Source: Botryllus schlosseri (Eukaryota). From it: 33,000 nt of DNA. Positions 1 to 28,805 of the stretch are shown here, piece after piece. Position 1 is the stretch's first letter. Every line of letters starts with the position of its first letter. The stretch spans positions 20,181,001-20,214,000 of the forward strand of contig CM119379.1 of NCBI GenBank assembly GCA_051294905.1. The letters are read 5' to 3'. The position numbers and the translations under genes were made by a program. Below the pieces are notes generated by a model. That model was not told where the DNA came from. It searched no databases and worked only from the letters and a program-made list of their open reading frames with translations.

Positions 1-3000
1 TTCTGTTGGAGAAAAGTATTATTTGCCATTTATGGAAAACGGAAATAGCATGCAGATCACCTAGTCCATAGCATTGTTTTTGATTCAAAACATCGCCACT
101 GTCTGCACTTGCAGCAATTCTGTCATATTCCGAGGAAATTTGCCTGCAGATTAAAATATCAGATTATGCTTCATACAAAAGAACACATAGTTACATAATA
201 TTAAAATCATAGTCAAATTGACAAATCGAACCTGATATTCATAGCGTCTTGTTCAGCATTTTGACTGGAATTGAGCTTTTCAGGGAACAAGGATCCTTGA
301 GGCAAGCACTTGGAATTATTCCACATGGATTCCAGGCATTCTGTCGGGTGTGGACCGTAGTACGCCTCACAACCACCAGGATACACTACAATAAACAGAT
401 GTATTTAACTGTTGTAAAAACATAAATGGATTTCTTGCCTATTCCAAAGCATTCCTCTTGCTCGGTGGCATTGCCATTATCAGCCATGTCGAACGTCGTC
501 TCATACAAGGCAATAATATCTCTGAAAATAGCAACATATGGAACGATGTACAAACTACATTCCTACTACTATACTGTAGCACTCACCTAAGGTTCATAGA
601 GTCTAAATTTGTGTGTTCAATCATAGTAAGATTGTAGGGATATTTGTAGCCTGCGCGTAAACACTTTGCACCAAGCCACATTGTCACGAGACATTCGGTG
701 GAGTGTGGACCATAATAGTTGGTGCAATTAGCAGGATACACTGTCATAAATAAAATACGTTAACTGAAATTTTTTTCAAAATGTCAATGTATCTTACCAA
801 GACCGTAACATTGCTTTTGACTGGAAATATCCCCATTGTCTGCGTCTGATGCAGTTCGATTATAAAGAGATGATATTTTTCTACAAATACAAAAAAGATT
901 CATATCTGCAATTTATGGCAATTATGGCAATACAAAATTACATATCAATATCAAACCATCATATATTTCACATCATGGCATCACAGTGCCATTAATTATT
1001 CATTTTATTGAAGTCAAGAATAATTACTGAATGCGGCCAAATTACGGCTTCGATATTTGAATATTAGCATTGATGGATTCCGAATTCAGTAAAAAAGTTC
1101 AAAAAAATTATTATCGGTATCTGTGAATATACAAAACTTCACTAATTGATATCTGACCTGACATTCATTGCATCAAGTTCAGCATTCTGACTTATATTCA
1201 ATTTCTCCGGGTACAGATCCCCTTCAGGTAGACAGTGGGATTCATTCCACATTGACTCGAGACAATTTGTGGATTTAGGACCATAGTATGAGTCGCAACC
1301 GTCCGGATAAACTGGAGACGCAAGACAAATTTAATATATGAACAGCAACAACCCAAAAGATAAATATAAGACGCACCAAGTCCTAAGCATTCCAACTGTT
1401 TGCTTGTATTTCCATTTTCAGCTAAACGGAACGTCTCATTGAACAGCGAAATTATGCCTCTGAAAACAGGCAAGTGGATGAAAAGATTGATTGGAAAAGG
1501 AGCACCTACCATATACCAACCTCAAGTTCACAGTGTCTAAATACAGCAGCTCACTAGTGGTCAAATTGAGAGGATATTTCGTTCCCTTCGACAAACATTT
1601 GGCAGCAAGCCAAATGGTTGAAAGACAGTCCGTTGAATGCGGACCGTAATACTTCGTGCAGTCAGCAGGATATTCTGTCACAAGCCAAATGTTATATAGC
1701 TATAAAAAAGTAACATGCAACATCTCACCGAGTCCGTAGCATTCTTTTTGTTTCGACACATCGCCACCGTCTGCTTCCCCTGCAATCTCATTGAATAACG
1801 ATGAAACTTGACTAAAAACACAAAAAATGGATTGGCTTAACAACTGAAATAACACCAAAACTGGACAGATTCAGAAAGGATTCTGATTTGAAGGCTTAGG
1901 CGTACCTTTACATGCATAATTTGGGAGCCTATGATTTGTTGTTGAAAATATTATCAATTTCAAGTGAGAGCACTTTTAAATGGATCAATTAGTTCACAGA
2001 AACAGCTCCACAAGGAACTTCGAGTGTTAAATTACAGTGAAGTGCATTCCAAATCGTATGATATCAGATGGATCAAATAGTCAATAGGGTGAATTGTACA
2101 CGACTGATGAAATCCTACTAAAATTCCGTTTTTATTTCTTATCCATTGCACAATGTTTAAATATTTAACTCTTTATCAGCCGGTTACTACCACAAAAATC
2201 AAATTTTTCAGCCAGTTTTGTAATGAAAAATGATTGTTAACCGCTAATCATATAAACTTCTGCGAGACAGTTCCATAAAACTGATGCTAACGGGCTGAAT
2301 CTGGCCCCCGAACAAACATAGGTCATAATAAGTGAAATCTCACGATATGTCCGTTATGTCCAATTCAGCACGCTGACTTGCACTCAACTTATCCGGATGC
2401 AAGTCTCCTCGAGGCAAGCATTTTGAGCTATTCCAAATGGTTTCAAGACAATCACTTGATATAGGGCCATAGAAGGATGCACACCCCGATGGGTAATCTA
2501 GAAAGAGATAATTTTTAGCGTGAAGTGTACCATATCACATCTATTCCATACTTATTCCAAAGCATTGCCCTTGCATTGTAGAATTGCCTCCGTCAGCCAA
2601 ACGGAATGTCTCATTATAAAACAACTCCACGTCCCTGTTCAGGGTAAGCATAGCACAGATTCAAAATAGCAAACCTTACTCACAATCGCAAATACCTCAA
2701 GTTCATCACATCCAAATCCAGACGGTCACTTGTAGTAAGGTTGTAAGGATAGTTATATCCTGTTTGGATACACCTTGCAGCAAGCCATAATGTGACCAGA
2801 CAATCGGTCGAATGCGGACCATGATATCGCGTGCAATTAGCAGGATAAACTATGCAAAAATTATAAATTCAGAATCATTAAATTCAATATAAGTAGAGGC
2901 TTACCAATTCCATAGCATTCTTTCTGGCTTGAGACGTCGCCACTGTCTGCCTCTGTTGATAGTTCTTCATAAATTGAAGTGACTTCTCTGAATATAACAT

Positions 3001-6000: not shown

Positions 6001-9000
6001 GATCTTATTGTGCAATAAAATTATTTCTCTGCAAAAAAACAGTGTGTGAATATAATAGAAAATATAATACAAAAATGACATACCTTATGTTCATGGCTGC
6101 CTGATTTGCACGCTCAGTTACGGTGAGATTGTAGGGATACTTATATCCTTTCTTCAAGCACTCTGACCCAAGCCATATCGAGGACAGGCATTTTGTTGAG
6201 TGTGGACCATAATATTGCGTACAATTTCCCGGGTACACTGGCAATAATTTCAGTTTGAATATTTTGAGAAATACAAATTATCATTCAGTTTGCAAGTTAT
6301 AATGTGGATCAGCAAACTATGCTGAGTTTGATAGATAAACATTGAAGAAAAGCAGTGCATCAGCTATACCACTGCGTATGTGCAGTTACTCCGCATCTTA
6401 CCAAGTCCGTAACATTTTTTCTGGCTTGACTTAATCCCTTCGTCAGCTTCCTTGGCAGTTTTATTATACATGGTGGAAATCGTTCTGAAAGTGCACATGT
6501 GCTTTTATAGCAGATAAACCTATTCAGTACCATAAATTAACGACAATGTTCATAAAATCTGCATGTAAATGATAAATTACAGGTTGAAAACATATTACGG
6601 TAAATAATATTATTTATATTCTAAGATTTTGCAACCAACAATGTTGCAAAAAGCACCAAAGAATACTCTATTACCAGGAGGAATGATGAACACATATACA
6701 AAAAAAGTCACTTTCTTCAGTCAGTGACACCTAATGTCTTCATCCAAATTGATGGGAAAATGGAGGTAACATTTCAGGTTAGGATGAACTGGACTTTTCC
6801 AGCAGAAAAATGAGATTTTTTTTTTAATAAAGTTCTTTTCATATTTTAAAACCAGAGTCTAAGTGCATACCTATCATCTACAACAGATTACCAATTTCTG
6901 AAAATATGTTGCACCTTTATAGGGTGGATTAATTATATCCTTAAAAAAGCACAAACATGTTCATGGGTTCAGTTTTTCTCCCAACCCCTAATGGAAATCG
7001 GAACTGATACATAGAATATCCCATGTAAAATTCAAATTTATAGCCGGGTTTTCAATTTCTAATAGAACATGGAATGTAGTGAATAGAACAACAAAAAGAA
7101 TAATATTAAATATAATGTAACATATATATGATATTCATACTTGATGTTCATGGCATCAAGTTCGTCCTTCTGAGTTGAATTCAGATTTTTGACATGCAGA
7201 TCCCCTTGAGGCGAACACTTGGATTCGTTCAACATTGATTCAAGACAGCCGGTAGTGTGTGGACCGTAGAAGTGATCACAGCCATACGAAAATACTAGAA
7301 AGGCGAATGAAGACCAACTACGATGAAAGCAAATTCAGTAAGAACTCTCACTTATTCCAAAACATTCCCGTTGCTTGGTTACATTTCCCTTGTTAGCGAG
7401 ATTATATGTTTCATTAAATCGCGCCATAACATCCCTATGAGGAAGCGCATTAGAAAGGAAGAATCATACGTAGACAGTAAGAATAACAAACCTGAAGTTT
7501 AGAGTATCTAACACTGCATGTTCACTCGTAGTTATATCATAAGGATATTTTGATCCTTCCCGTGTGCAACTCACACTTAGCCACATTGATGAGAGGCACT
7601 CGGTTGAATGAGGGCCGTAGTATTCCGTGCAATTAGTAGGGAATTCTAAAAGAGAATAGTGAAATAAATAATTGAACAATTTAAGCCCAAAAGGAACAAT
7701 ATCACTACACAATACTAACCCATTCCAAAGCACTTCAATTGATCTCTCACTCTACCTTTACTAGCAGCAATTGCTGAGTTATTGAAGAGAGTTGCGAGCG
7801 GTCTATAAAAAAAGCGGTTGGCGATTTTCACAAGTGCAAGTTGACATAAATTCCAGTGTGAATAAGTCCATCAGCTAATCCTTGACAGTAGATCATAAAA
7901 TCCCAGGAAATATTTGAAAGCAGAGACATATCATACCTCAAGCCCATTCCTGTAAAGGAACTGACGTCACTGGACGATAGCTTGGAGGGGAATGCATATC
8001 CTTCTGAAAGACATCTGACATTCTCCCATACAACACTGAGACAAGCCACCGAGTATGGTCCGTAATACGTAGCGCAACCGCTAGGGTATTCTGAGAAAAA
8101 GCCCAAATTACACCCAAAATCATTTTGTTCACTTAGCTCTAATATTACCCATTCCGAAACAACGAAGTAGGCTTGTTACGTTGCCTGCGTCAGCAGACGA
8201 TTTCGTTCCATTGAAGTCGCGAATAATATCCCTTATAAGAAACTGCATTTAGATATCCAATGCGCACAACGACATGTATATTAGATTAGGGCTTTTCAAA
8301 CTTTTTTCTCTAAGACCCCATTGTGAAAGAAAAACGTATACGGGAATCGAAGATGGAAAATTTAACCTGTGTACTGTAACTGCCATTTGTTCGACAGAAG
8401 TCCTTTGAATGCAATATCAAGTGACAAGTTTGTGAACAACCAATGCATTCCGTGAAACGAATAACAACATAAAATTATAAAACGATAAAGACCGTCTAAT
8501 GTGACAGTGTATGAAACAGAATTTGTGAGGTCATATTTGCTTTTACAACGCCAATGGCATAGCAGATAACAACAGCAAAACTATCGTACGAAATGGAATA
8601 TCAACTTCAGCAATGAAATTACTCACACTTAATTCTACCCATGACAATAATTAATATTTATATAACGGTGTCTGTTACTGTGGGCATTTCATGTTAATTT
8701 TAGGGGTGCAATAATTTATGTGCCATACTTGTATTCGCTAGATGGCGTATGCTTGACGACACTTCCTGGTCTGGTCTAACGGAATATTCTGGATATAGCT
8801 GTGATAGGGTTCGGTTTGTCAATAATAATTGGCCCACCGGACGTTCCCCCACTGTATCTACCGATCTTGTTGGGAGAATATCTTATTCGTGCTACTACTG
8901 TGACGTATTATAATTTGGATATGAGGAAATTCGATAAATTGGAACTTCAAGTAATATACTGTTTCTACCATACTTAAAGATCGCGTATATTTACATCGGA

Positions 9001-18000: not shown

Positions 18001-21000
18001 CGTGTTGCTTCATTCTGACAATGTTGTCGACATCACAATTTTTCATCACGCTCTTCTTGATATAAGAACCATGCAATGCCCAAGCGGTCTTGCATCAGTT
18101 AGGATATTGTGGTACGTTGACCATAACACCATGTCAATTTGTTTCATTTGACCGTTTATGATTCAAAATGGGCCGTCTACAACGGTAGGTCTATAAAGTA
18201 GGCTACAAGCTGTAAAATATCAAATGATAAGTTCACCGAAAGTGCAAAATCTACGATAAAAACAAAATGCGGAGGTCAAAGAAATTTTGACTTTGTAAAC
18301 AATTTTGACAAATTTTGACCTAGCGCTACAATTTTGACAAAATTTTGACTTATTTTGACATGTCAAAAAAAAATCGCCTTAGTTATCAGTAATTTGAATT
18401 AATTTTGTTTACTATTTAAGTGAACAAGTCTTATTACCAAGACCGAAGCAATCCATTTGCCTTCCAGCATTTCCACTGTCAGCATCTTCCTTAAAGGTTT
18501 TGAACTCCGCCAACACTTGTCTGCAAAATCATCAAGAACTATTAACCAAACCGATAGACGAGATACATATGGATTCAAGAAACGGCAACTGACTTCACGC
18601 TACGAGCCATGTAACGATTAAAATCCGTTGTGCTCAACTTGGATGGATGCAGTTGACCTTCATCCAAACACAAGGCATCAGACCAAATTGAATTCATGCA
18701 ATCCATGGAATGGGGTCCAAAACGAACTTTGCAACCTTTCGGAAGCACTACAACAGACTATGCTTGAAGAAAATATTTTAAAAACTCAATCAGTAAAACA
18801 TACCTTCTCCGTAACAACACAGTTGTCCCTTTGGTTCTCCGTCCAGAGCGTCATATAATAATGATGTGACGTATTCACTCGCTTGACTAAAAACGAAACC
18901 AAAATTGACAGAAAATTTAAGGTTGAGATACGGTAACGAACTAAAATAAATATAGTTCAACGAAATTTCCTCATTTCTAGTAACCAATGGTGTTTCAGTT
19001 TTTATGTTTTCCGACCCGGCAAGATAAGTGAATATCAGAAGCGACGAGTAACAGAGTATCAACTACGTAAACTCAATACGAAAGTACTCCTGGCTTTCCT
19101 TTTTCTATTTGTCATAAACACTGAGAGATATAGCAGAGCCAAATGAAAGAAATTTTGAAAATACATACCGGTATCATCGATTGCACAGGCTAAACTACAA
19201 TACTCACAACAAATTAGTCCACATGAGTTCACAATATTTTTCAGGATAATTTGCCTTTAGGTGATTAAGACCTTCAACCGCGCAAGCACCGTCCCTCCAC
19301 ACTGCCTCCAAACATCCTGCTGAGTGAACGCCATGGAATGTGTCGCAACTGCTTGGAAAGCCTTGCAAAAATAATCATAAAATTTACATATATTGGCCGT
19401 TAAAGAAACAACCGCGGCAGATTACCATAGCCCCAGCATGCTTGACGACCCCTACCACCAGCATATGCCGCATTAGCAAAATTGCGAAAAGTGTCGATAA
19501 TTTGCCTGTGTGAAAAATAGATTGTGAAATATCTGTGATGTTAAGATCTCAAGATCACGATTACAAAATTATCAGATTCCACGCTGTTTAACTGTATGGA
19601 AATTTTGAGTCGTGTGAGCGTTTTGGCATAAACACAACTCATCAGCCCTACTTCCAACACAGGCTCATACTCTGACGCATCGTAATGCAAGAATTGAAGA
19701 GGATACATATAAGGAATGTATGCTAAGAATGTAAATGAATCTAACTCTTTCATAAAGCTCAAATATTCAGTGAATCAGAACAACTCACTGGTGAGTAAGC
19801 CACTTCAAATATGTGCCGGAACTGGTATGATATATCTTTTGAGGAGCTGCTGCACCGACGAGTTCACACCCGCTATTAACCCACGCTATATGCAAGCAAT
19901 TCAATCGACGAGGTGTACTACCAGAGCATTCTGGTGGCAGAGCTGTTAAGAAATCAATTGGCTGGGATTATCAACTGAACAACACCTGGAAATGGCTGAA
20001 ATATTCATAATATGAAATGTAGTATGGTCAAAGCAGCCACAACACCAAGTCAATCGATACTATTTTGTTGCAGTTGTGACAAGTAATGGAAATAGGGTCA
20101 CTCGAAATATCATTGCAGACCCAATTCATATAATACTATCTAGTTGATATAATCGAACAAGCAGGCATTTCTGGCTTTGAAACTGAAACCTACAATCAAA
20201 GTCACAAAGGTAGTGCAAAAAGTGCCAATAAATGTGCTCGGTAAAGCACTCTGACACTGACCATCTATTCAGCAGGTGTTATACGGAATTCATATATCCA
20301 AAAACATACATAGGCATTCTGGAAATGGGGCGCTCCATCCAACATTCCCAAAACAATCGGTTACTTTACAAGTCGCAGTGTCTCTCCGGTATTTAAGTAT
20401 TGTATCGGAGGGGCAAGTAATAGTGCATACGGAGTTGAGGTTATTTGCTGATGTACACGTCAGACTAGCGCCCGGGAGCAGTGGAGCTAGGTGATCGTCT
20501 GAACATTTTAATCCTGCCCAAAAGAAACATCGATTCAAAATCAACCGAGTTTTAACTGACTTGGATACTTGCCTGGATCTACCACGCAAGTCGGAATCCC
20601 AGGGAACCACTCTCCCTTCCGACCCCCACTAATGTCGATACAATCAATTGTGCCAGCCCCATCAATAGACAGTTTATATCCAGTAGCACAGGAAAATTCA
20701 CACCGCGGCTTCCCAGTGTCGTTAGAGATTCCACAATGAAATGAGGTTTGAGGCGAGAGTGTCTCTACAGGAATCCTTGGACACTCAATATCAGCTAAGA
20801 ATGAGAACGGTGAAATAAAAATAGGATTACAGGTGGTCAAAATAGTCATTGTTGGTACTCAAGTAGTAAAAGCAGAAGAAATGTTCCAAGTTTCTACTCA
20901 AGTACGAGTAGAAGTGTCAATTTCCAAGTTAGTAAAATGTAAGTATTTTCTAGGGCTACTTTTGCCTAAAACTGGTTATGTAGCAGTAGAAAGTAGTACA

Positions 21001-24000
21001 AAATTATTACACTCAAGTAAGTAATACATGTAGGAAAAACCTAATTGGGAGCTCCGAAAAGCAGGACTTAGTTACAGACCACCTCTGGATAAGATGTAGA
21101 TATATATATAGAGAGAGAATTTGCACAAGTTGATAGAAACATAGCGATTCCGCAGAAATATATTCCCTTGCTCTGTCATGGATTGAATACTCACCAATTT
21201 CGCAAATGAAAGGTAGTTTACGATCGCATTTAAAATCATTCCACATCCCATCAGAATTAACAATGCCACCACAATCTTCAATGCCTAGCATGTCGTTTGG
21301 TTCCTGCTCTGCACTGCCACTCGATCGCCATCTCTCAAATGGTTTGTCGGCAACTATAAACGCATAACCAATAAGCATTCGATAAATTGTCTAAACATGA
21401 AATAAACGAATGATGTCAGTCAGGTCGAGAGATTATCACTGTGTTAAACTTCTTCGTCAACAGCTTCCAAATCAGGACACTCGGGATAATTTTTAAGCAT
21501 TACTCCTGGTCTGGGCTATATAGTGTATAACTTTCAAGAGTTTACCATTCCGACAAAAAAGGTTGACAAGCACTTGTCTAATGTACCGGTACATGGAATG
21601 ATGAAGGACACATTCCAGGAGACTCTGAACTAGAAACGTACTTTCGCAAATTAGCGGTAGTTTTAGGTCGCAGAGGCTGTCGGTCCACTTTCCCTCCTTA
21701 TTCAAAGTAACACACCGTTCTCCATTGTCATACCCGTTAGGCTCTGTGTCGGCTCGTTCCCAATTTTCATAATCTATTGTAAAATACAGCTTGAGGGCCC
21801 TCGACACAAAGTTTATAGAAAATGCTCATACTGGCATGACCCAATCTCTTTACAGATGACTCGCCATTGGCAGAATACCACGACGAATACATGTAAAGCC
21901 TCATTAAATCGCCTCGGACGAAATCCGCTTTACTGATCGCTTGAACATCCATGTAGAATTTGTCGTGATGATACGGTTTATTCAAGTAATAATTGTTTTT
22001 TTCATAATCGTCGATCATCTCCTATTTAGAGAGGTAGAATATGTATGATGGGATAAAATTCGAAAATTGATGCCGTAAACCATTAGATACCAGAAATTTT
22101 TATCAAATCACAACACATACCATTATGTTCAGAGGTCGAAAATAAAATAACCACTTTTGGTCATTTGAAGATCTGGGCAAATCAATAATTTGGCTTCAAG
22201 CAGGGTTGTAACCAAGTTAAAAGGCTACGAGTCTCAAGTCAATCTCACTTTTATAGTTTTGACTCGAGTCAATTCGTGTCATTTTCAATTCACTACAGAG
22301 TCCAAATCAGTGAGCAGCGGGTCGAGTCCAGTTCATGGTAATATGACTCGAGTCTGAGTCCAAGTCATCGTGTTCACTGCTCAGTTTCCAGTTAAAGTCT
22401 TGTTAAACCCACCTTTTATAACTCTGTTTGGAGGTATCCAATAGTTCGCATTTATAATATACTAATTGTCCTCCCCTTTTAGCAGTTTCTGGTCGCATTT
22501 TCAAGTACCAGTACCAATAGACGAAATCCCAATAGTGTGGTTACTTTACTATTCGGAATTACAATGAAATGTCGGTCTTGGCCGTCTGAGTCTCGATTCA
22601 TATGACTTGGTTCTAGTCATGCGCAACGACTCGAGTCCAAGTCGAGTCAGTACACAGATTGACTCAAGTCGAGTTAAGTCATTTTCTCAAATATCAAGTC
22701 AGGTGGAATCATCAGAAAATCGTGACTCGAGTCGAGTCATGACAACCCTGTCTTCAGGTTGAATCGAGTATCACTCACTGTGACGTCATAACAGTACGAT
22801 GATGTAGAAAGTGCAAATGTGTACCTTGTATATGATCATAAACAAAATAATGCTAGTTTTAGTTCTAGTTCGGTACTTTTTCAAAAACACCCATTTGATT
22901 GCACTTTGTGGCAATGTGTCTTCTACTAGGCAACTCGAATCATTGTGTCCAGCCCTAGTGACTGGTCATTAATATAGTAGGTTTCTCTGATTGTATGGTT
23001 ACTATTAGAAGCAATTTTATGAGTGAAATCCTCACAACCACAAATGTATTGATACACTGCATAACCATCACTACTTGTATTGTGTACCCTCAAGTCCTTT
23101 TAAAAGTTACTCAGGCCTATCCAGATATACTTCCAACATGTAATTTTCTTCTTCTACTTGAAGTCCTTATTTTGATCGAATAGATGTAATTTAATTTGCG
23201 AAGAATAGGATCCGGCCCTGAAAGAAGCACATACCTTAGTCTTGTTTGTTAATAGATCATTGATTTCCTTGGATTCAACACGCGGCAGTGTACCAGACAT
23301 CGCATTACAATGAGCCTTACATTCCAGGTATGTGCAGAATTCCGTGTAGGCCCATAGAAGATAGTTCTTCCGTTGATAAGTTATGTTGTAGGAGTACATT
23401 CTGAGTTTACCCCCAATTGTAAAATCTAGGTGAGGATAATTATAGACGTCTACCGAGCTGGAAGAAAATAAAATTCTCAATTTTCAACACTAACTGATGG
23501 AAAATGGTTTGTTAACTAATGTTGAATCCACGAATTCCCAACGACCCTCAGTTCCACTGTCATTCATTCCAATCCAAGTACCTGATACAAGACGTACAAA
23601 GAGGAGAGATATGCAATGTCATTGGTATGTAGCTTCTATACCTTGCGCAGAATTGAGATCAGACATAACTGTTGACATTTTGCTGACAAGCCATTCATGA
23701 ATCGCTGAGGATTTAGGCATTGCCAATGTCCCATAAATGACTGTAAGATGAAATATATGAAATATTTGGAGCTGGACTAAAAGTTACTATGGTGTTACCC
23801 CGTCATAGCCTCAAGCATACTCATATTCCCACGGTTGTAACCAAGTCACAAGGCTATGAGTCACAAGTCAATCTGACTTTTATGGTTTTGACTCGAGTCA
23901 AGTTAAGTCACTTTTAATTCACCACCGAGTCAAGTCGGAGTCCAAGTCAGCAATCAGAGGGTCGAGTCCAAGTCATGGTATTATGACTATGAGTCCGAGT

Positions 24001-27000
24001 CCAAGTCATTGTGTTCACTGCTCAGTTTCCAGTTAAAGTCTTGCTAAACCCACTTTTTATAACTGTTTAGTGATATCGAGTGGTTAGCATTTATAATATA
24101 CAAATTTTCCTCACTTTTAGCAGTTTCTGGTCGCATATTCAAGTAGTAGTAACAATAGTGTGGTTACTTTACTATTCTTCGAAATTACAATGAGATGTCG
24201 GTACTGGCCGTCTGAGTCTCGAGTCATATGAATTGGTTCGAGTCATGTGCAATGACTTGAGTCCAAGTCGAGTCAATACGCAGAATGACTCGAGTCGAGT
24301 CATTTCCGTATTTTGAGAAAATGACTCGATTCAAGACAAATCATCATAAAATCAGGACTAGAGTCGGACTTGAGTCGAGTCCTGACTCGAGTCATTACAA
24401 CCCTGCATATTACTAACTATCAGTAAAAATTTTTCACAGAATGAATTAAATCTCTGACCTTCACAATATTCTTCAGCCTGTCCCCATGTCAAAAGATCCT
24501 TGAAAATCAGATATGTTTTATCCAGATGTACGTCACGGAGGATGGCACTCCTTGTTGTATATGGAGCAGGAACTTTGGCTGTATTAATCAGCTGATTACA
24601 TTGTGGAATCCCAAAAGATATGGAAATCTTCACCCGTAATGCAATTAGGCATAGATCCACTCCATGCCGTACTCATTTTAGTGCCCGTGCAAGTAATATA
24701 ATGTGTGTCATCATCAACTTCGTATCCACCGTCACATGTTACATGACATCTGTGACGAAATCTACTTCCTTCACATCTTGCTGTCCTTATTTTTGAAGTC
24801 GGCAATCGAAATAAAGGACAAGATAGTACTAAATGGAAGAAGGGAACCTGTAAGGTTGTGATGCTCGAGGGAATGATATAACAACTTCAACCCACTAGCA
24901 CATTCATCTTTTACGAGTGACCACCGACCACCAAAGCTCGAATTACTCGGGCTGTATATACATAGCAACATTATATCCCTTCTGCCGAAATAACCAGAGG
25001 GACAATCAAATGCACAAAGGCTGCCAATTCCGTCATCAAAATCACTACCGCTGCAGGCATCCTTCACCCCATGCTTGAATGATTCCAGACTGGGACATTT
25101 CGCGGCTGTATGAAAGTAAGCGACTTCAACTATAGGCCTATAGTAAATTGCTGCTTTTCACAGCATTTTTGCATGACAAAACAGGCTTCGTAATATGTCC
25201 ATTGTCATATACAATGCACGAATACGAATCTACCATTCTACTATGCCGCAAACTTCATAGATGTACTATCCTATGCAACTTTAAATCAGGCTAACAACAT
25301 AGAATGGTTTCTGAAGATACCATAATTATCAGTAAATGGTGAACAAGGTAGCCAACTCACGGACGCATGTTCCAACAGTGTCGTCTTTATAGAAGTTAGC
25401 ATTGTCACGCCACACAAATTTCCCGCCATTTTCACTGCATGTTAGATTACGCGGTCCGTGAACAGTATAACCAGAGGAGCAGGAAACTGCGAGCACAGAT
25501 CCCACATAGTTCAAATTTGAATATATGTACTGTGTCTTTCCAGAACTTTTGTGGAAGTCACATGTACCTATGCCAGCTGCAATGAAATTTTAGTTCATGA
25601 TGATCATGATCATGAAAAATGGTACAGACAATTTCATAAGTTGCAGTCTTGACAGAAACTATAATGTAGGAACGTATTTCTTTTGGTAATTAGATGGCAT
25701 TGACAACCCAATACTATGATATAGTCATGGACTAAGCATCTACGAAAGTACTGGAGCCAGAGAGTGGTAGTCGCAGTAGTGATGTGGAATCTGGCAAGAG
25801 TTGGAAGTGGAGTCGCACAGAAAAATTTTTGATTCCCCACACCTCGTAACTTTGATGTTATTCAGTAAAATCATATAGTAATTCATGCAGAACTCAGGCA
25901 GTTACTGATGAGGCTGTAGAATATCAGTTGATATCAATTGATATTCTATAAAAAGCTTAATCAGCAGCTGCCTGGCTGATTTATGTCCATGTCTATATGA
26001 ATCATAGACCTACCATAGAAAGTTCAAATGTCATGCACAACATGAGCAATGTGCACATACACTTGCTAAGATTTCCATGAGAATAATTGAACGTTAATAT
26101 CTGCAACATATACTTACAAATTAAAATTAAAATTATCAATGTAAAAGATGCTCTTTTTAACACAAAAGGCAAAATGACACTTACATACACATGCAATGAT
26201 TGGGGGGGACCAGTCAGCAGCTCCGTCATATTGATATGAACACATGATCAATTCCGATGCAAGTCTCTTAAAACCACTGTTGCAGGTAACTTCGCAGTAC
26301 GAACCAATGTTATATTCATCGGTGCAAGAAAAGGTTGCATGGGGATCGATGAAATTAGGATCCGGGCAAGGAGAAGCTGAAAATTGAGTAGATCAAGCAA
26401 CACGAGATGGCATTTAACCCTTACGAAGTGGGTGTATCATATATATGATATGGCATGTCTCCGACACCAATCTCTCCATGTTGACACGCCATAGACATCA
26501 GGTACTACGTTTTTTGAAAAGCTGAGACTTTTCCGATACATTTGGTACCTTACGCAAAAATTTTGGTTTGTAAACATAAAAAAAATAAAAAAATTATATG
26601 AAAATATGGTTTTCACCTAAAATTTCCAGATATTTTCAGAGTGGGGAATATTGTTGGAATATCTGCCAGAACATCAGAAGTCGACATGTACCGCATTCTG
26701 TGTAAATGTTCACAGTTCACAACATCAAAACAATTTCTGAAGAGTTTTCGGAAGGAGATTTGTTCATTTTGGTCATGCTTCAGTGATTTTTAAGATCTAG
26801 GTCAAGTTCAAGTGCAAATTCAGACGGCATATGAGTCAAAAACAAGTTTACTATGCCTGCAAATGGTTGGATATGACGAAAGAAAGCATATCGCGTTGTT
26901 TTATGCCATAAACCGAACGGTTGGGGTCCGATGGAGTCTTGATCATAAACTTGACCTTGATGACCCCTCATTAACCACGCCCATTTCTAAATTCTATATG

Positions 27001-28805
27001 TATTTTCCATTTTTCGATATCTGGCGAACCGCGCGGTTTACAACCATGGTTGACGGTTTGTTTGAAACCTGGCAACAGTGGCTCGCACTGAAGCATCATA
27101 TTTCTCTCTCTGGCGCCATCCTAAGGGTCAGCTCTGAAAATTGGGAAAGAGAGAGATTTTTAGGGGGAAAAGTTTGTTTATTTAAACTTATTCAAAACCC
27201 TTAGACAGGTCATGGGATGCCGATCAAGGGTGGAATCGGTAGAGGTTTATAATCCGCCCACTTTTAAACTGGAACGGCCCAGATTCAAGTCTTGGTGGGG
27301 TCACGGTGATAATTTCAAAAGTGAAGGTCGATTCTGCAAAATATGGCCCCACCTCGTTAGGGTTAAAGGATTAGCCTGCACATTATCAGTGAATAGACAT
27401 TGACACTATCGTACCCAAATGCTTGTAATGAAGGCCTTTTCTACAGATTTAGATTACTACATTAGGAGTGCTCAGTCTACAACCAAATGTGGCTCTATTT
27501 TTATTTGCGATTGATCAACACGCTAATGGTGCATTTATTTTTGAATTAACAAAAGAAATGGTAAAATGAGGAATAACTCCCCACCCTCTCTTACGTCACA
27601 ACAATTCCAGTCGCATATTACAGAGAAAATAAAAAAAATTAACAAAATGAAAATACAAATCAACAAAACATCTTACGAAAACAATTCTTGGCTGTAGAAA
27701 CCCATGTCGCCCTTTCTCCCAAAATAGGATCGCTTTCATAACCGCCTGACCAGGTACACTTGAATTCGTTGCTTATCCCGCGGTTAAATGGACATGGGGC
27801 TGCGCAGACTGTACTAATTGGGTAGCCTACTTCATTGCCAAATCGATTTTTTGACGGCCTTCTATCACATGTTGATGTAGTTGATGACAGACCGGTTATT
27901 TCCCAGCATGATAAAGCTGGAATTCAAAGATGATATAATGATATGCCATATTGTAAGTTATTGATTTTGTTGAACTTACGAGTGCAATAACCGTCAATGC
28001 CATACCAGACGGCATCGGCGACCTTGTCTGATTCCAAGTCAAACACTGCATGACATTCCTTATATGCATCTGCATTAGCGTTATACGAACCCACACCACA
28101 AAAATAACTACAACGAGAGGCAAGGGATGTTTTTCTGTCACAATTGTACCGCCCACCGGCATGCCGATCATTACCACTCGGAATCCCTGAACATGTGGCA
28201 ATATAACTGAACATAGCGCCATCACCTGAAATGGTCAATAGGAGGTAAAAGATATGCTTATAACATATTAGCCTAAATGTGTGAAATATCTTTTAAAAGG
28301 ATATTTTATCAGTCAATACTGAACATTCATTGAATAAGTGTATATAACGGTCTATGGCAGTGGTTCTCAACCTGGTGGGCATGAAAGCATCTGAAGGGGG
28401 CGCGAAGAAGCGATCAACTGAAATTTTTTCGCGCTATGCTCAATTTACCTCCAATTCATGCGTGTTTCTCTGTATATAGACCAAATTTCATATTTTTGAA
28501 TTCTCTAATCAACAGTCATAACCTTCCATGCCATCAAACAATCTCTTGTGGTTGCTAGCATCCCGGTTGGATTTTGTGATATGATGATAAGGGGGGCGCG
28601 AGATTTTTCACTATCATAAAGGGGGCCGTGTCTAAATAAAGGTTGAGAACCACTGGTATATAGTGTTCACGGTTTTGAACTGAAACCATTGAGTTGATAA
28701 CACCCTGCAATGTCAAACCATAATCTACTACCAGTACTCACTTGAATAAAATCGGCATGCAAGCATGCATAACATGAAAAAGTCATGGTAGGTTTGTCTT
28801 GGCAT
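1..28805 (-). CDS. Large multi-exon secreted/extracellular protein: signal peptide + 6 sushi + interleaved double C-type lectin + 2 sushi + >=24 novel 79-aa Cys repeats (3' end outside window)
   Basis: 64 exons join in one frame with compatible phases and GT/GC-AG sites, with no in-frame stops. An acceptor (CTTTTCTCCAACAG on -) at 3-16 opens a 65th exon at the window edge. Confidence 0.88.
61..385 (-). CDS. Cys repeat 24 (exons 232-385, 61-143)
   Basis: YPGGCEAYYGPHPTECLESMWNNSKCLPQGSLFPEKL... + QISSEYDRIAASADSGDVLNQKQCYGL. Confidence 0.9.
439..740 (-). CDS. Cys repeat 23 (exons 587-740, 439-521)
   Basis: YPANCTNYYGPHSTECLVTMWLGAKCLRAGYKYPYNLT... + DIIALYETTFDMADNGNATEQEECFGI; the second exon ends in a GC donor. 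Confidence 0.88.
798..1311 (-). CDS. Cys repeat 22 (exons 1158-1311, 798-880)
   Basis: YPDGCDSYYGPKSTNCLESMWNESHCLPEGDLYPEKL... + KISSLYNRTASDADNGDISSQKQCYGL. Confidence 0.9.
1377..1674 (-). CDS. Cys repeat 21 (exons 1521-1674, 1377-1459)
   Basis: YPADCTKYYGPHSTDCLSTIWLAAKCLSKGTKYPLNLT... + GIISLFNETFRLAENGNTSKQLECLGL. Confidence 0.9.
1729..2497 (-). CDS. Cys repeat 20 (exons 2344-2497, 1729-1811)
   Basis: YPSGCASFYGPISSDCLETIWNSSKCLPRGDLHPDKL... + QVSSLFNEIAGEADGGDVSKQKECYGL. Confidence 0.9.
2552..2849 (-). CDS. Cys repeat 19 (exons 2696-2849, 2552-2634)
   Basis: YPANCTRYHGPHSTDCLVTLWLAARCIQTGYNYPYNLT... + DVELFYNETFRLADGGNSTMQGQCFGI. Confidence 0.9.
2905..5887 (-). CDS. Cys repeat 18 (exons 5734-5887, 2905-2987; 2.7-kb intron)
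   Basis: YPENCRTYHGPHTTDCLESIWNNSKCVHQGFLYPDKL... + EVTSIYEELSTEADSGDVSSQKECYGI. Confidence 0.88.
3027..4458. mobile_element. Putative non-autonomous piggyBac-like element
   Basis: TTAA on both sides (3023-3026, 4459-4462). Imperfect TIRs: CCGAATGGCATCGGC versus rc CCGTTTCGCACCGGC. No transposase ORF seen. Confidence 0.5.
5946..6237 (-). CDS. Cys repeat 17 (exons 6084-6237, 5946-6028)
   Basis: YPGNCTQYYGPHSTKCLSSIWLGSECLKKGYKYPYNLT... + EIILLHNKIFRLANDGDNAKQEECFGL. Confidence 0.9.
6402..7294 (-). CDS. Cys repeat 16 (exons 7141-7294, 6402-6484)
   Basis: FSYGCDHFYGPHTTGCLESMLNESKCSPQGDLH... + TISTMYNKTAKEADEGIKSSQKKCYGL. Confidence 0.9.
7352..7645 (-). CDS. Cys repeat 15 (exons 7492-7645, 7352-7434)
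   Basis: FPTNCTEYYGPHSTECLSSMWLSVSCTREGSKYPY... + DVMARFNETYNLANKGNVTKQRECFGI. Confidence 0.9.
7720..8090 (-). CDS. Cys repeat 14 (exons 7937-8090, 7720-7802)
   Basis: YPSGCATYYGPYSVACLSVVWENVRCLSEG...FTGMGL + PLATLFNNSAIAASKGRVRDQLKCFGM. Confidence 0.9.
8149..9278 (-). CDS. Cys repeat 13 (exons 9125-9278, 8149-8231)
   Basis: YPTGCSKYYGPHDLDCLQTLWEYSHCLPEGEAYP... + DIIRDFNGTKSSADAGNVTSLLRCFGM. Confidence 0.9.
9693..9989 (-). CDS. Cys repeat 12 (exons 9836-9989, 9693-9775)
   Basis: YPDDCTTYHGPHSVECLVTLWTTARCSPHGYKYP... + ELSFFFIATFDSAESGNLVNQTYCFGM. Confidence 0.9.
10057..10357 (-). CDS. Cys repeat 11 (exons 10204-10357, 10057-10139)
   Basis: PPDECKKFLGPHSTLCLNTIWLGVGCLDSGTRYP... + QYMTETNLTRILSDGGDAKSQRDCFGF. 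Confidence 0.9.
10428..11767 (-). CDS. Cys repeat 10 (exons 11614-11767, 10428-10510)
   Basis: YPAGCETYYGPYSVACLTSIWSSVKCFPEG...YTGLGL + NVISSFNDTAISANNENQAQEMKCYGM. Confidence 0.9.
11833..12124 (-). CDS. Cys repeat 9 (exons 11971-12124, 11833-11915)
   Basis: FPKHCTQYYGPHRMPCLVTMWDDSLCLPQGIAHP... + EIMNEYNGTKSSADSGNQTDQLRCFGL. Confidence 0.9.
12179..13258 (-). CDS. Cys repeat 8 (exons 13105-13258, 12179-12261)
   Basis: FPENCTFFTGPHPIDCLVSIWKSVKCVSQGTKYP... + ELKDYLQITADLANGGDVEGRKHCYGL. Confidence 0.9.
12333..12854 (-). mobile_element. hAT-type MITE, GACTCGAGTC-rich family (inverted copy)
   Basis: Reverse complement of the elements at 22201 and 23830. Degenerate CAGGGTTGTAA TIRs; TSD poorly preserved. 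Confidence 0.75.
13593..13876 (-). CDS. Cys repeat 7 (exons 13726-13876, 13593-13666; 4 aa shorter)
   Basis: YPYNCSNFYGPHSEECLIFIWEYMCSKEGTSYP... + QVINETTELSLSGDRESALACTGY; exons are 151 and 74 nt and keep the frame. Confidence 0.85.
13991..15406 (+). mobile_element. hAT (Charlie/SPIN-like) deletion derivative with decayed transposase
   Basis: TIR CAGGGGTTCTCAAC/GTTGAGAACCCCTG; perfect 8-bp TSD CAATAGAC; subterminal GCGGCCCGC repeats; broken peptides QLSDSTVTRRV, YFSLASDESSDSTD and GAPSMKRKGVGLIGL. Confidence 0.9.
15420..15755 (-). mobile_element. tRNA-derived SINE
   Basis: On -: A-box-like TCGTAATGGTTAAGCG and B box GGTTCAATTCC (15689-15699), then the body GGGTCAGACCAAAG...ACTGGTATCCATGG and an A-rich tail. 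Boundaries approximate. Confidence 0.8.
15801..16290 (-). CDS. Cys repeat 6 (exons 16137-16290, 15801-15883)
   Basis: YPVGCTTYYGPYSVECLNTLWYDAECVSEG...FTGMGL + RVASSFKDIKDSADAGSVSDRIKCYGL. Confidence 0.9.
16346..16641 (-). CDS. Cys repeat 5 (exons 16488-16641, 16346-16428)
   Basis: FPSKCLTYRGPHTVGCLETMFYEALCTPEGTFHP... + NVIAEFNALKASADRGNIPDQERCFGM. Confidence 0.9.
16701..16991 (-). CDS. Cys repeat 4 (exons 16838-16991, 16701-16783)
   Basis: LPGYCTKYYGPHPIDCLVTIWYSASCLTKGDHHP... + KLKDHFRSINAHAEDGDLASQTYCYGM. Confidence 0.9.
17542..18381 (-). mobile_element. Non-autonomous hAT element retaining the transposase C-terminal dimerization fragment
   Basis: TIR TA(G/A)GGCGA; TSD CTTATCAG/GTTATCAG; TTTTGAC subterminal repeats; PTTAAVERSFSILGKLL motif in ORF 17627-18076. 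Confidence 0.85.
18438..18747 (-). CDS. Cys repeat 3 (exons 18594-18747, 18438-18520)
   Basis: LPKGCKVRFGPHSMDCMNSIWSDALCLDEGQLHP... + QVLAEFKTFKEDADSGNAGRQMDCFGL. Confidence 0.88.
18804..19361 (-). CDS. Cys repeat 2 (exons 19208-19361, 18804-18886)
   Basis: FPSSCDTFHGVHSAGCLEAVWRDGACAVEG...KYCELMWTNL + QASEYVTSLLYDALDGEPKGQLCCYGE. Confidence 0.84.
19426..19942 (-). CDS. Cys repeat 1 (exons 19789-19942, 19426-19505)
   Basis: LPPECSGSTPRRLNCLHIAWVNSGCELVGAAAPQK... + QIIDTFRNFANAAYAGGRGRQACWGY; the most divergent copy. Confidence 0.78.
20310..20513 (-). CDS. Sushi/CCP domain 8 exon (7 Cys)
   Basis: 204 nt, phase 1-1; LKCSDDHLAPLLPGASLTCTSANNLNSVCTITCPSD...ATCKVTDCFGNVGWSAPFPECL. Confidence 0.9.
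20573..20794 (-). CDS. Sushi/CCP domain 7 exon (6 Cys)
   Basis: Phase 1-1; DIECPRIP...FHCG...RCEFSCATGYKL...IDC...GEWFPGIPTCVVDP. Probable GC donor CAG|GCAAGT; the alternative is a GT donor at 20560. Confidence 0.88.
21195..21353 (-). CDS. C-type lectin C-half 2 (EPN/WND)
   Basis: 159 nt, phase 1-1; ADKPFERWRSSGSAEQEPNDMLGIEDCGGIVNSDGMWNDFKCDRKLPFICEI. Confidence 0.93.
21642..21773 (-). CDS. C-type lectin C-half 1 (EPN)
   Basis: 132 nt, phase 1-1; YENWERADTEPNGYDNGERCVTLNKEGKWTDSLCDLKLPLICE. Confidence 0.92.
21832..22021 (-). CDS. C-type lectin N-half 2, exon b
   Basis: 190 nt, phase 0-1; EMIDDYE...DKFYMDVQ...SSWYSANGESSV (divergent equivalents of the WIG and WxWxDG motifs). The donor could alternatively be at 21840. 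Confidence 0.72.
22201..22750 (+). mobile_element. hAT-type MITE, GACTCGAGTC-rich family
   Basis: TIR CAGGGTTGT/ACAACCCTG; TSD GCTTCAAG/TCTTCAGG (6/8); collinear with the copy at 23830. Confidence 0.85.
23235..23425 (-). CDS. C-type lectin N-half 2, exon a (5' boundary 23425 or 23449)
   Basis: Phase 1-0; ...YLLWAYTEFCTYLECKAHCNAMSGTLPRVESKEINDLLTNKTK; donor AAG|GTATGT. The acceptor choice is ambiguous. Confidence 0.8.
23495..23581 (-). CDS. C-type lectin N-half 1, exon c
   Basis: 87 nt, phase 1-1; TWIGMNDSGTEGRWEFVDSTLVNKPFSI (WIG motif); donor GTTAGT. Confidence 0.87.
23642..23740 (-). CDS. C-type lectin N-half 1, exon b
   Basis: 99 nt, phase 1-1; IYGTLAMPKSSAIHEWLVSKM... (the GxLA helix motif). 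Confidence 0.85.
23830..24405 (+). mobile_element. hAT-type MITE, GACTCGAGTC-rich family
   Basis: TIR CACGGTTGTAA/TTACAACCCTG; TSD CATATTCC/CATATTAC (7/8). Confidence 0.87.
24459..24578 (-). CDS. C-type lectin N-half 1, exon a
   Basis: 120 nt, phase 1-1; ...KTYLIFKDLLTWGQAEEYCE (the CTLD TWxxAxxxC motif). Confidence 0.87.
24634..24828 (-). CDS. Sushi/CCP domain 6 exon (6 Cys)
   Basis: 195 nt, phase 1-1; LSCPLFRLPTSKIRTARCEGSRFRHRCHVTCDGGYEV...ITCTG...AWSGSMPNCIT. Confidence 0.88.
24896..25105 (-). CDS. Sushi/CCP domain 5 exon (6 Cys)
   Basis: 210 nt, phase 1-1; AKCPSLESFKHGVKDACSG...IGSLCAFDCPSGY...LCIY...RWSLVKDECA. Confidence 0.9.
25361..25576 (-). CDS. Sushi/CCP domain 4 exon (4 Cys)
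   Basis: 216 nt, phase 1-1; GTCDFH...VGSVLAVSCSSGYTVHGPRNLTCSENGGKFVW...GTCV; donor GTGAGT. Confidence 0.9.
26185..26376 (-). CDS. Sushi/CCP domain 3 exon (6 Cys)
   Basis: 192 nt, phase 1-1; SPCPDPNFIDPHATFSCTDEYNIGSYCEVTCNSGFKRLASELIMCSYQYDGAADWSPPIIACV. Confidence 0.92.
26418..27362. mobile_element. piggyBac-like MITE
   Basis: TTAA TSDs (26414-26417, 27363-27366); TIR CCCTTACGAAGTGGG versus rc CCCTAACGAGGTGGG (13/15). Confidence 0.82.
27677..27916 (-). CDS. Sushi/CCP domain 2 exon (6 Cys)
   Basis: 240 nt, phase 1-1; LSCWEITGLSSTTSTCDRR...STVCAAPCPF...FKCTW...TWVSTAKNCF; donor GTAAGA. Not in the supplied ORF track. Confidence 0.85.
27980..28225 (-). CDS. Sushi/CCP domain 1 exon (6 Cys)
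   Basis: 246 nt, phase 1-1; DGAMFSYIATCSGIP...YNCDRK...RCSYFCGVG...ECHAV...VWYGIDGYCT; donor GTAAGT. Confidence 0.85.
28358..28655. mobile_element. hAT-type MITE (CAGTGGTTCTCAACC family)
   Basis: TIR CAGTGGTTCTCAACC/GGTTGAGAACCACTG; TSD GTCTATGG/GTATATAG (6/8); homologous to 30558-30866. Confidence 0.85.
28742..28805 (-). CDS. First coding exon, putative signal peptide
   Basis: TTTTATCAG|ATG, MPRQTYHDFFMLCMLACRFYS, phase-1 donor GTGAGT that fits the next exon. Hydrophobic core is short. Confidence 0.62.

Follow-up and report, generated by a model that had tools for sequence, protein, structure and literature searches.

A candidate giant lectin, sushi and helical-repeat membrane protein at a locus of the ascidian Botryllus schlosseri

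We analysed a stretch of 33,000 nucleotides from the genome of the ascidian Botryllus schlosseri (G000:C9:20181001-20214000, hereafter the window), taken from an assembly of 495.5 Mb in 219 contigs. The window has ~39% G+C and no N, and all features of the gene that we describe lie on its minus strand. Stop-free segments of this strand encode sushi-like and C-type-lectin-like peptides from ~28.3 to 20.3 kb; from ~19.9 kb down to position 1 they encode a recurring peptide pair, YPxxCxxYYGPHSxxCL...W....C...G...P...L and ...FNxT...ADxGN...Q..C[YF]G. Joined as exons with canonical AG/GT borders, these segments give an in-window open frame of ~2,800 residues. An Rfam search of the window gave no match. 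We propose, with a probability of roughly 60%, that the window holds the beginning of a single minus-strand gene of ~78 kb, the orthologue of Styela clava LOC120345301, whose product would be a heavily N-glycosylated membrane protein of ~8,900 residues with a lectin/sushi head (~920 residues), a rod of 47 repeat units (~3,700 residues) and a lectin-rich, anchored tail (~4,300 residues). The window covers about the first third of this predicted protein, and the gene continues far past window position 1.

Exons of the head and the repeat array

Splice-site and phase analysis resolved the head into 16 exons: exon 1, six sushi exons, seven lectin exons and two further sushi exons. Both canonical AG/GT sites were seen in 14 of the 16; for the other two, acceptor and donor were seen at 22021-21832, and the acceptor at 21773-21642, whose donor at 21642 reads AAA/GT. 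Spliced from exon 1 (28805-28742) to the N-terminal exon of the inner lectin domain (23425-23235), the head encodes 617 residues without a stop, and splice phases stay compatible through 22021-21832, 21773-21642, 21353-21195 and 20794-20561. From sushi 7 to repeat unit 24, the 50 spliced exons (6,117 nt) give another stop-free frame of 2,038 residues. Exon 1 (28742-28805) is the best candidate 5' of sushi 1 for an exon that leads from an ATG to a donor of the right phase (phase 1), and it is in frame with the next 10 exons. After its start codon it encodes a segment with the short hydrophobic core FFMLCMLAC, which may serve as a signal peptide.

A sushi/CCP module spans ~60 residues, among them four conserved Cys with a Trp ahead of the last one, and it is usually encoded by one phase 1-1 exon. 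Eight head exons have this Cys/Trp pattern together with phase 1-1 borders, six of them with six Cys, one with seven and one with four. With the Pfam cut-offs that we used (20.7 bits for Sushi, PF00084; 22.6 bits for Lectin_C, PF00059), the Sushi profile was exceeded by sushi 3 (26185-26376, six Cys; 32 bits, E 1.6e-7), sushi 4 (25361-25567, the classical four Cys; 25.2 bits) and sushi 6 (24634-24828, six Cys; 25.2 bits). Sushi 7 (20561-20794, six Cys) scored 16.9 bits, below the cut-off. The two 3' exons match the sushi region of S. clava paralogues by tblastn: sushi 7 matches S. clava sushi heads with an E-value of 4e-12, and sushi 8 (20310-20513, seven Cys), the last head exon, with a phase-1 donor, matches the sushi regions of the models P0154 and P0151 and reaches E 2.8e-12 with a local sushi hidden Markov model. 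Sushi 1 (27980-28225), sushi 2 (27677-27916) and sushi 5 (24896-25105), each with six Cys, had no Pfam match and are assigned by the Cys/Trp pattern and by their phase 1-1 AG/GT borders. The sushi 1 exon also has an alternative minus-strand frame at 27899-28234, hydrophobic and open over 112 residues, which is unusual for an exon of such length and probably due to chance.

A scan for open exons bounded by AG and GT detected the array as a strict alternation of a 154-nt exon (A), which leads from phase 1 to phase 2, and an 83-nt exon (B), which leads back to phase 1. Together, A and B encode 79 residues, four of them Cys, in the pattern YPxxC-x10-CL-x3-W-x4-C-x3-G-x3-P ... AD-x-G-x4-Q-x2-C[YF]G. 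The window holds 24 whole units and, at positions 1-2, the first two bases of exon A of the 25th; 22 more units follow beyond it, so that the array, including flanking DNA, totals 47 units and ends ~11.5 kb past position 1.

In our exon table, the array starts with unit 1, which is degenerate (A 19942-19789, B 19505-19426), followed by unit 2 (A 19361-19208, B 18886-18804), unit 3 (A 18747-18594, B 18520-18438), unit 4 (A 16991-16838, B 16783-16701), unit 5 (A 16641-16488, B 16428-16346) and unit 6 (A 16290-16137, B 15883-15801). Unit 7 has slightly shorter exons (A 13876-13726, 151 nt; B 13666-13587, 80 nt). It is followed by units 8 (A 13258-13105, B 12261-12179), 9 (A 12124-11971, B 11915-11833), 10 (A 11767-11614, B 10510-10428), 11 (A 10357-10204, B 10139-10057), 12 (A 9989-9836, B 9775-9693), 13 (A 9278-9125, B 8231-8149) and 14 (A 8090-7937, B 7802-7720). 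From ~7.6 kb onward, two subtypes alternate and form a super-repeat of 158 residues. This part of the window includes units 15 (A 7645-7492, B 7434-7352), 16 (A 7294-7141, B 6484-6402), 17 (A 6237-6084, B 6028-5946), 18 (A 5887-5734, B 2987-2905, separated by a 2.7-kb intron), 19 (A 2849-2696, B 2634-2552), 20 (A 2497-2344, B 1811-1729), 21 (A 1674-1521, B 1459-1377), 22 (A 1311-1158, B 880-798), 23 (A 740-587, B 521-439, with a GC donor) and 24 (A 385-232, B 143-61).

Across the 52 units of an alignment (A2), the four Cys, the Gly and the Pro are invariant and Trp 21 is nearly so, being fully invariant in an alignment of di-units (A4). Mean pairwise divergence among exon copies amounts to 0.43 for the first codon position, 0.36 for the second and 0.64 for the third. 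The units are old. Their third position has come close to saturation, and the second varies least, as under purifying selection. Tandem Repeats Finder detected no array, because the units have diverged and are split by introns. The array contains 7.7% Ser, 7.1% Thr and 5.4% Pro and has ~2.2 N-glycosylation sequons per unit, which gives it the potential for heavy N-glycosylation.

Splicing was observed both within the head and within the array. Contigs of the sequencing run X1 contain GT..AG joints on the minus strand at four predicted borders, two of them in the array (16641/16701 and 18747/18804) and two in the head (20794/21195 and 21353/21642). These joints confirm the acceptor of sushi 7, the donor of exon B of unit 2 (18804 to 18747) together with the acceptor of exon A of unit 3, and the donor of exon B of unit 4 (16701) together with the acceptor of exon A of unit 5 (16641).

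The original prediction for this stretch had described a signal-like exon and eight sushi domains, mostly with six Cys, around a double EPN lectin, followed by novel repeats that act as a glycosylated spacer. The exon model, Pfam and the Cys patterns bear out this series of domains, and the density of sequons agrees with the spacer. It had given positions 1-28805 for this protein; both the array and the gene were found to run far past position 1.

The lectin region

Seven lectin exons lie between sushi 6 and sushi 7, and we assign them to an outer and an inner C-type lectin-like domain (CTLD). Such a domain is recognised by the Lectin_C profile, with a core of WIGL type and a C-terminal pair of Cys. 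The outer CTLD begins with an N-terminal exon (N1, 24459-24578), which matches residues 3838-3860 of S. clava P0155, the product of LOC120345301, with 57% identity (tblastn). Its second exon, with the helix region GTLAMPKS...HEWL (23642-23740), gives a colinear tblastn match to P0155 3862-3982, and its WIGMND exon (M1, 23495-23581) a weak match to Pfam Lectin_C (profile 41-64), the S. clava counterpart matching profile positions 3-65 with an E-value of 2.8e-7. The inner CTLD follows with an N-terminal exon (N2, 23235-23425; weak Lectin_C match, profile 4-37, colinear with P0155) and a middle exon (M2, 21832-22021), which matches P0155 4021-4057 by tblastn; the splice sites of M2 were seen, and a piece of an X1 contig ends exactly at its predicted donor 21832. 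Next come the C-terminal exon of the inner CTLD, with EPN and WTD (C2, 21642-21773; Lectin_C 29.3 bits, profile 68-106), and that of the outer CTLD, with FERW, EPN, E and WND (C', 21195-21353; 24.1 bits, profile 71-106). In the X1 contigs, RNA links C2 directly to C' (21642 to 21353) and C' to sushi 7 (21195 to 20794). Both C-half exons exceed the Lectin_C cut-off and both carry EPN. The mannose-type Ca2+/sugar motif EPN/E/WND is complete in the outer C' only, as the inner C2 has WTD in place of WND. FERW, EPN, E and WND of the C' exon are invariant in six aligned copies from three ascidian species.

The half-domains of the head are thus arranged in the order N1-M1-N2-M2-C2-C', in which the outer CTLD is not one contiguous domain. 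As two N-halves are followed by two C-halves, two complete domains result most simply if the inner one is inserted in the outer one. The order therefore fits a 'double lectin' that consists of a complete inner CTLD placed between the N- and C-halves of an outer CTLD: the two EPN motifs that had been predicted are present, and the two domains look like a nested and not like a tandem pair. The tail of the gene repeats the full order N1-M1-N2-M2-C2-C', and so does one of the plus-strand paralogues in the Botryllus genome. A second plus-strand paralogue has M2-C2-C', where the end of the fetched region cuts it off. In S. clava, residues 3835-4200 of P0155 have the nested order in full, matching the Lectin_C profile at 3-65, then at 4-35 and then at 71-106; in Phallusia, residues 1-160 of the protein P0012 contain the M2-C2-C' part only.

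When the outer N1-M1 part was co-folded with C' (S. clava sequences), the score was 0.57 compared to 0.00 for the best control; the three runs agreed in 81% or more of their contacts, and the predicted local distance difference test (pLDDT) score of the partner was at least 53. Among 78 solved complexes, 51 reached the mark for such scores, as did 2 of 108 mismatched pairs, but only 5 of the solved complexes did so with a score of 0.60 or less. The result is rated as weak support, and a passing score does not tell which of the two C-halves is the true partner. To our knowledge, no nested C-type lectin domain has been described. If true, a lectin inside a lectin would be a new way to build a bivalent C-type lectin.

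Two observations concern the lectin exons and their introns. In one plus-strand paralogue (L016 3591-3719), the inner C-half has QPN and not EPN. QPN is the galactose-type motif in classical CTLDs, and on the basis of this motif the paralogues may differ in sugar specificity. Furthermore, a direct repeat of ~475 nt occurs at 22201-22674 and 23830-24300 (77-95% identity, spacing ~1,630), in two lectin introns that each follow an N-terminal lectin exon. Its copies are far more alike than the flanking lectin exons, and the repeat is probably a mobile element or the result of intronic gene conversion and not a relic of an old domain duplication.

The junction between head and array

The phase-1 donor of sushi 8 is compatible with the phase-1 acceptor of the first repeat exon, which lies 367 nt downstream. 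The first repeat exon has neither a start codon nor a signal peptide and needs a phase-1 donor upstream of it; in the interval of 367 nt we found no AATAAA or ATTAAA and, by eye, no start exon of compatible phase. At the protein level, the resulting junction, ECL/SLPPEC...CLHIAW, is similar to the one between sushi and repeats in P0151 and P0154, two S. clava models in which a sushi head leads into the repeats. In the two plus-strand paralogues, the distance from the last sushi exon to the first repeat exon downstream is ~180 and ~440 nt, and a Phallusia protein joins the same lectin halves with repeats. We consider it likely that head and array belong to one transcript.

Several observations weigh against this conclusion and against the gene model more generally. 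It is only a guess that the run X1 is RNA, and unspliced pieces occur in it as well. In two bulk RNA-seq runs, of which 6-13% was sampled, no reads fell on exons; all reads seen there belong to a transposon remnant in an intron and to a 30-nt repeat. Depth is zero at 19401-20400 in all four runs, and no read or contig spans the junction from sushi 8 to the first repeat. If sushi 8 is left unspliced, its frame stops after nine codons, and a shorter, head-only product is possible. The RefSeq model of the S. clava orthologue starts inside the array and lacks a head, and in the newest S. clava annotation the head of a paralogue ('P-selectin-like') is set apart from its array. Within the head, the donor of sushi 7 at 20561 was picked by phase alone and implies an intron of 47 nt, and the predicted signal peptide of exon 1 is short and weak.

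These observations lead to an alternative with two genes, one encoding a secreted, selectin-like head (six sushi, the lectin and two sushi) that ends just past sushi 8, and the other, separate gene consisting of the array with repeats and tail. Such a division would account for the missing RNA bridge, for the stop behind an unspliced sushi 8, for the S. clava isoform X2, which begins inside a repeat exon, and for the separation of 'P-selectin-like' head and array in S. clava. However, the first repeat exon offers no start codon or signal peptide and calls for an upstream donor, and in the 367-nt gap no start exon of compatible phase was seen by eye and no poly(A) signal was found. Furthermore, the sushi-to-repeat junction recurs at three loci of the Botryllus genome and in two older S. 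clava models, the start of the S. clava model inside a repeat exon looks like a truncated prediction, and the S. clava products that result from the split end in peptides that look like intron read-through. We therefore regard two genes as unlikely and keep a single gene as the preferred reading. Automatic annotation, as seen here, breaks giant genes into pieces that are named 'P-selectin-like' or 'uncharacterized'.

For the claim that head and array form one product, the original prediction is thus supported by the compatible phases and by the recurrence of the junction in paralogues, and it lacks a read that spans the junction.

The absence of exon reads from bulk RNA-seq, together with the degeneracy of some proximal units (1-3), could also suggest that the array is decaying, non-functional DNA, either a pseudogene or an exon-like satellite beside a real lectin gene. 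We rejected this explanation as extremely improbable, because it is contradicted by a frame that is free of stops over 50 exons, by four Cys, a Gly and a Pro that do not vary in 52 units (with Trp 21 nearly constant), by conserved codon positions 1 and 2 next to a nearly saturated position 3, and by the spliced RNA joints. The number of units is moreover conserved with S. clava.

Two further sequences attract reads. The first is a 30-nt stretch at 20837-20866, just upstream of the sushi 7 acceptor, which is covered by reads of all four runs. As the flanks of these reads are unrelated on either side, the stretch also occurs in some abundant transcript or repeat elsewhere. The second is a remnant of a hAT-type transposon in the intron between units 3 and 4 (17575-18400). 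It contains an open segment of 155 residues at 17630-18094 on the minus strand, whose similarity to the hAT dimerisation domain is weak (E 0.002). The element is very high-copy and transcribed, with a depth in the thousands in the runs X1 and X2, reads from each of the bulk RNA runs and numerous joints across internal deletions.

Tail, predicted product and relatives of the repeat unit

Beyond the array, the gene can be followed by comparison with S. clava. Residues 3541-7606 and 7754-7845 of LOC120345301 (P0155) match minus-strand DNA in colinear order between 11.6 and 49.2 kb past window position 1 (tblastn; flanking loci L011, L012 and L014-L019), and the tail extends to ~49.2 kb. LOC120345301 is an uncharacterised RefSeq model (XP_039270628.1, 4,991 aa; isoform X2 XP_077971250.1, 7,864 aa). 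It has 45 units compared to 47 in Botryllus, with two alternating subtypes in both species, and exon-level identity is mostly 30-68%. Given the colinear tail and the similar number of units, the window gene is orthologous to LOC120345301, although the S. clava model starts inside the array and, unlike the Botryllus gene, has no sushi/lectin head. In isoform X2, the 45 units are followed by CTLDs, an EGF-like match, ricin-B/CysR, sushi (at least 10-16 Pfam stretches), F5/8C and C-terminal hydrophobic helices. The domain content that we give for the tail (CTLDs, ricin-B/CysR, sushi and F5/8C) is read from this orthologue, the CysR match included. In the Botryllus tail itself, KLSKSWKRR follows a hydrophobic helix, and the last exon encodes another two such helices; both parts align to the S. 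clava C-terminus. From this alignment we predict a single transmembrane helix, then a cytoplasmic stretch and a pair of hydrophobic helices at the end.

Since ~4,300 residues follow the 47 units, the array is an internal rod between two lectin/sushi blocks and not a terminal stalk. The layout of a head plus a stalk, as first predicted, thus does not hold, and the tail carries a putative transmembrane helix. The predicted product would begin with a signal-like peptide, six sushi modules, the nested CTLD pair and two sushi modules, continue with 47 four-helix units and end with the tail of ~4,300 residues and its transmembrane helix. The repeats would pack into a stiff rod, with a length of the order of 100 nm if each unit adds ~2-3 nm, and with this rod the distal lectin/sushi head would stand apart from a further lectin/sushi/discoidin block close to the membrane. 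The outer lectin of the head, with an intact mannose-type Ca2+ site motif, is a candidate for sugar binding. The product may hence be a long-reach, multivalent receptor for glycan recognition or adhesion, with ligand type and role proposed from the domain content.

The same single gene could instead encode a mainly shed or secreted structural matrix protein of tunic, mucus or adhesive fibre, in which the repeat rods are load-bearing or fibre-forming. The very large size and the rod-like, heavily N-glycosylated array would suit such a role; so would the family cluster, with at least 128 repeat exons in ~180 kb, as is common for secreted matrix or adhesive families, and the PA14 domain that adjoins the unit in a giant-virus-like homologue. 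However, the helix predicted to span the membrane is followed in the tail by a basic stretch of stop-transfer type, the cytoplasmic/C-terminal part is conserved, and Pfam finds no VWD, CK or collagen polymerisation modules in the window or in the S. clava orthologue. We thus consider a matrix protein rather improbable and return to the anchored receptor.

Among known systems, the vertebrate L-, E- and P-selectins likewise carry a Ca2+-type CTLD and six-Cys sushi (CCP) modules on a membrane-anchored stalk, and a fragment of an S. clava paralogue bears the NCBI name 'P-selectin-like'. There are several differences. In selectins the lectin lies at the mature N-terminus, whereas six sushi exons precede it in the Botryllus protein. 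In selectins an EGF domain directly follows the lectin, whereas here an RNA joint leads from the last lectin exon to sushi 7 and Pfam finds no EGF in the head. Selectins have a sushi stalk, a single transmembrane helix and a short tail, compared to 47 non-sushi units and ~4,300 further residues in Botryllus, and the predicted protein is 10-15x larger, with further lectin blocks near the membrane. The macrophage mannose receptor family resembles the tail of the S. clava orthologue, which likewise has an MRC2-like CysR/ricin-B and several CTLDs before the transmembrane helix; no FNII was seen, however, and the family is without sushi, discoidin or 79-residue repeat blocks. Gel-forming mucins have Pro/Thr/Ser-rich, O-glycosylated repeats with VWD and cystine-knot domains, whereas the repeat here is folded, helical and Cys-containing, and Pfam finds no VWD or CK. 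The protein is therefore best filed as a giant modular lectin/CCP surface protein built on an undescribed repeat domain, and as neither a selectin nor a mucin.

Closer relatives occur in S. clava. LOC120346538 and LOC120346548 (XP_039272239.1 and XP_039272249.1) have a signal peptide and six-Cys sushi directly followed by 12-18 units, with a similar junction motif. Unlike the Botryllus gene, they have no Pfam lectin in the head, their models end in the array without a long tail or anchor, and they are only 1,635 and 1,930 aa long. The architecture is already present as uncharacterised S. clava RefSeq models; it is unstudied and not unique to Botryllus. A literature search for the S. clava LOC identifiers found nothing, and one ascidian single-cell paper mentions sushi and lectin genes in general terms only. 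Ascidians, the invertebrates most closely related to vertebrates, depend on innate recognition of the lectin and complement type. A conserved ~9,000-residue membrane protein in which a long rod sets two lectin/sushi blocks apart would be an unstudied candidate for a long-reach recognition or adhesion receptor.

The 79-residue unit is predicted by AlphaFold2, from the 52-unit alignment, to fold into four helices (pLDDT 97.3, predicted template modelling score (pTM) 0.85). A model of two units (pLDDT 96.9, pTM 0.84) suggests that the orientation between units is fixed; for the stiffness of the rod, this pTM is the basis, which is a further point against the rod as drawn above. As the original prediction had stated, the repeat belongs to no described family: the unit had no match in Pfam and none in a PDB sequence search, and in PDB fold searches Foldseek found nothing at E <= 0.001, an exhaustive aligner reaching at best Z 4.3 with generic AAA-lid-like helices. 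Feature searches of the ESM Atlas with exon A and with the full unit gave no usable match, and fold searches of the Atlas and BFVD with the unit returned generic helical matches only. The unit is hence a compact, confidently predicted fold without an entry in Pfam or PDB and a candidate for a new domain family.

A profile of exon A had 538 matches among 1.84 billion representative proteins. Of the matches with at least ~180 residues, all but one are ascidian or Logan fragments of ascidian type, in agreement with the lineage-specific gene that had been proposed. The unit is present in Styela, Ciona, Phallusia and in one giant-virus-like metagenomic protein. In S. clava, LOC120346536 has 25 units, and LOC120346548 and LOC120346538 have a sushi head with 18 and 12 units, respectively; Ciona intestinalis has one protein with the repeat, and a Phallusia mammillata protein combines lectin halves, a CTLD and three units. 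Word-based protein searches (with the P0155 tail region, with P0114 and with a di-unit profile) found nothing beyond S. clava, Ciona and unnamed Logan fragments, except one weak Hydra match. We also observed single degenerate copies of the unit between lectin domains, at residues 3541-3665 and 4196-4290 of P0155 and at ~165-245 of P0012. Thus, the unit is used not only in arrays but also singly as a spacer beside CTLDs.

The sole clearly non-ascidian sequence match is the Logan metagenomic protein P0114 (E 1.8e-11). P0114 has 702 residues and is Asn-rich; it has an N-terminal hydrophobic helix, a Cys-rich stretch that contains CGWC, two tandem units with the same Cys/Gly/Pro pattern and an adjoining PA14 domain (gene at 1401-3509 of the contig L020). 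The contig (5,022 nt) has dense, intronless genes that include DUF7197, a rhodanese-like gene and a dNK/thymidylate kinase, and this gene context looks like that of a giant virus. Among AlphaFold DB clusters, the best eight matches to the unit are uncharacterised proteins of the A0A6C0... accession series, which we take to be giant-virus-like (TM by query 0.67-0.76, Foldseek probability 0.98-1.00). Names among these eight include a major capsid N-terminal domain, TSP1 and DUF7495, and a further A0A6C0 entry, named for Link, has a TM of 0.53. These giant-virus-like proteins share the same small four-helix fold with the ascidian unit. They differ in having one or two units and not long arrays, in their partners (PA14 and, by name, TSP1 and Link) and in their intronless genes. 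A literature search on a giant-virus PA14/cysteine-rich domain found nothing.

The presence of the unit in giant-virus-like proteins raises the question of horizontal exchange. One might speculate that the unit is a new extracellular fold family common only to ascidians and giant viruses, which would imply gene exchange between the tunicate lineage, or associated protists, and Nucleocytoviricota, and that ascidians amplified it to rigid rods of the order of 100 nm with a lectin-within-lectin head. We think this scenario doubtful.

Within the Botryllus genome, all 128 matches to exon A lie on contig C9 between 20.03 and 20.20 Mb (~180 kb). More than 70 copies are clustered at C9:20035821-20087000 on the minus strand, 94-145 kb beyond the window, and represent one or more further giant genes. 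The two plus-strand paralogues, at C9 20103368-20104494 and 20128782-20129805, contain lectin, sushi and then few repeats, and one of them runs convergently toward the 3' end of the gene. Lastly, an interspersed repeat of 111 nt occurs with 76% identity at 28465-28575, within intron 1, and at 30667-30777, upstream of the gene.

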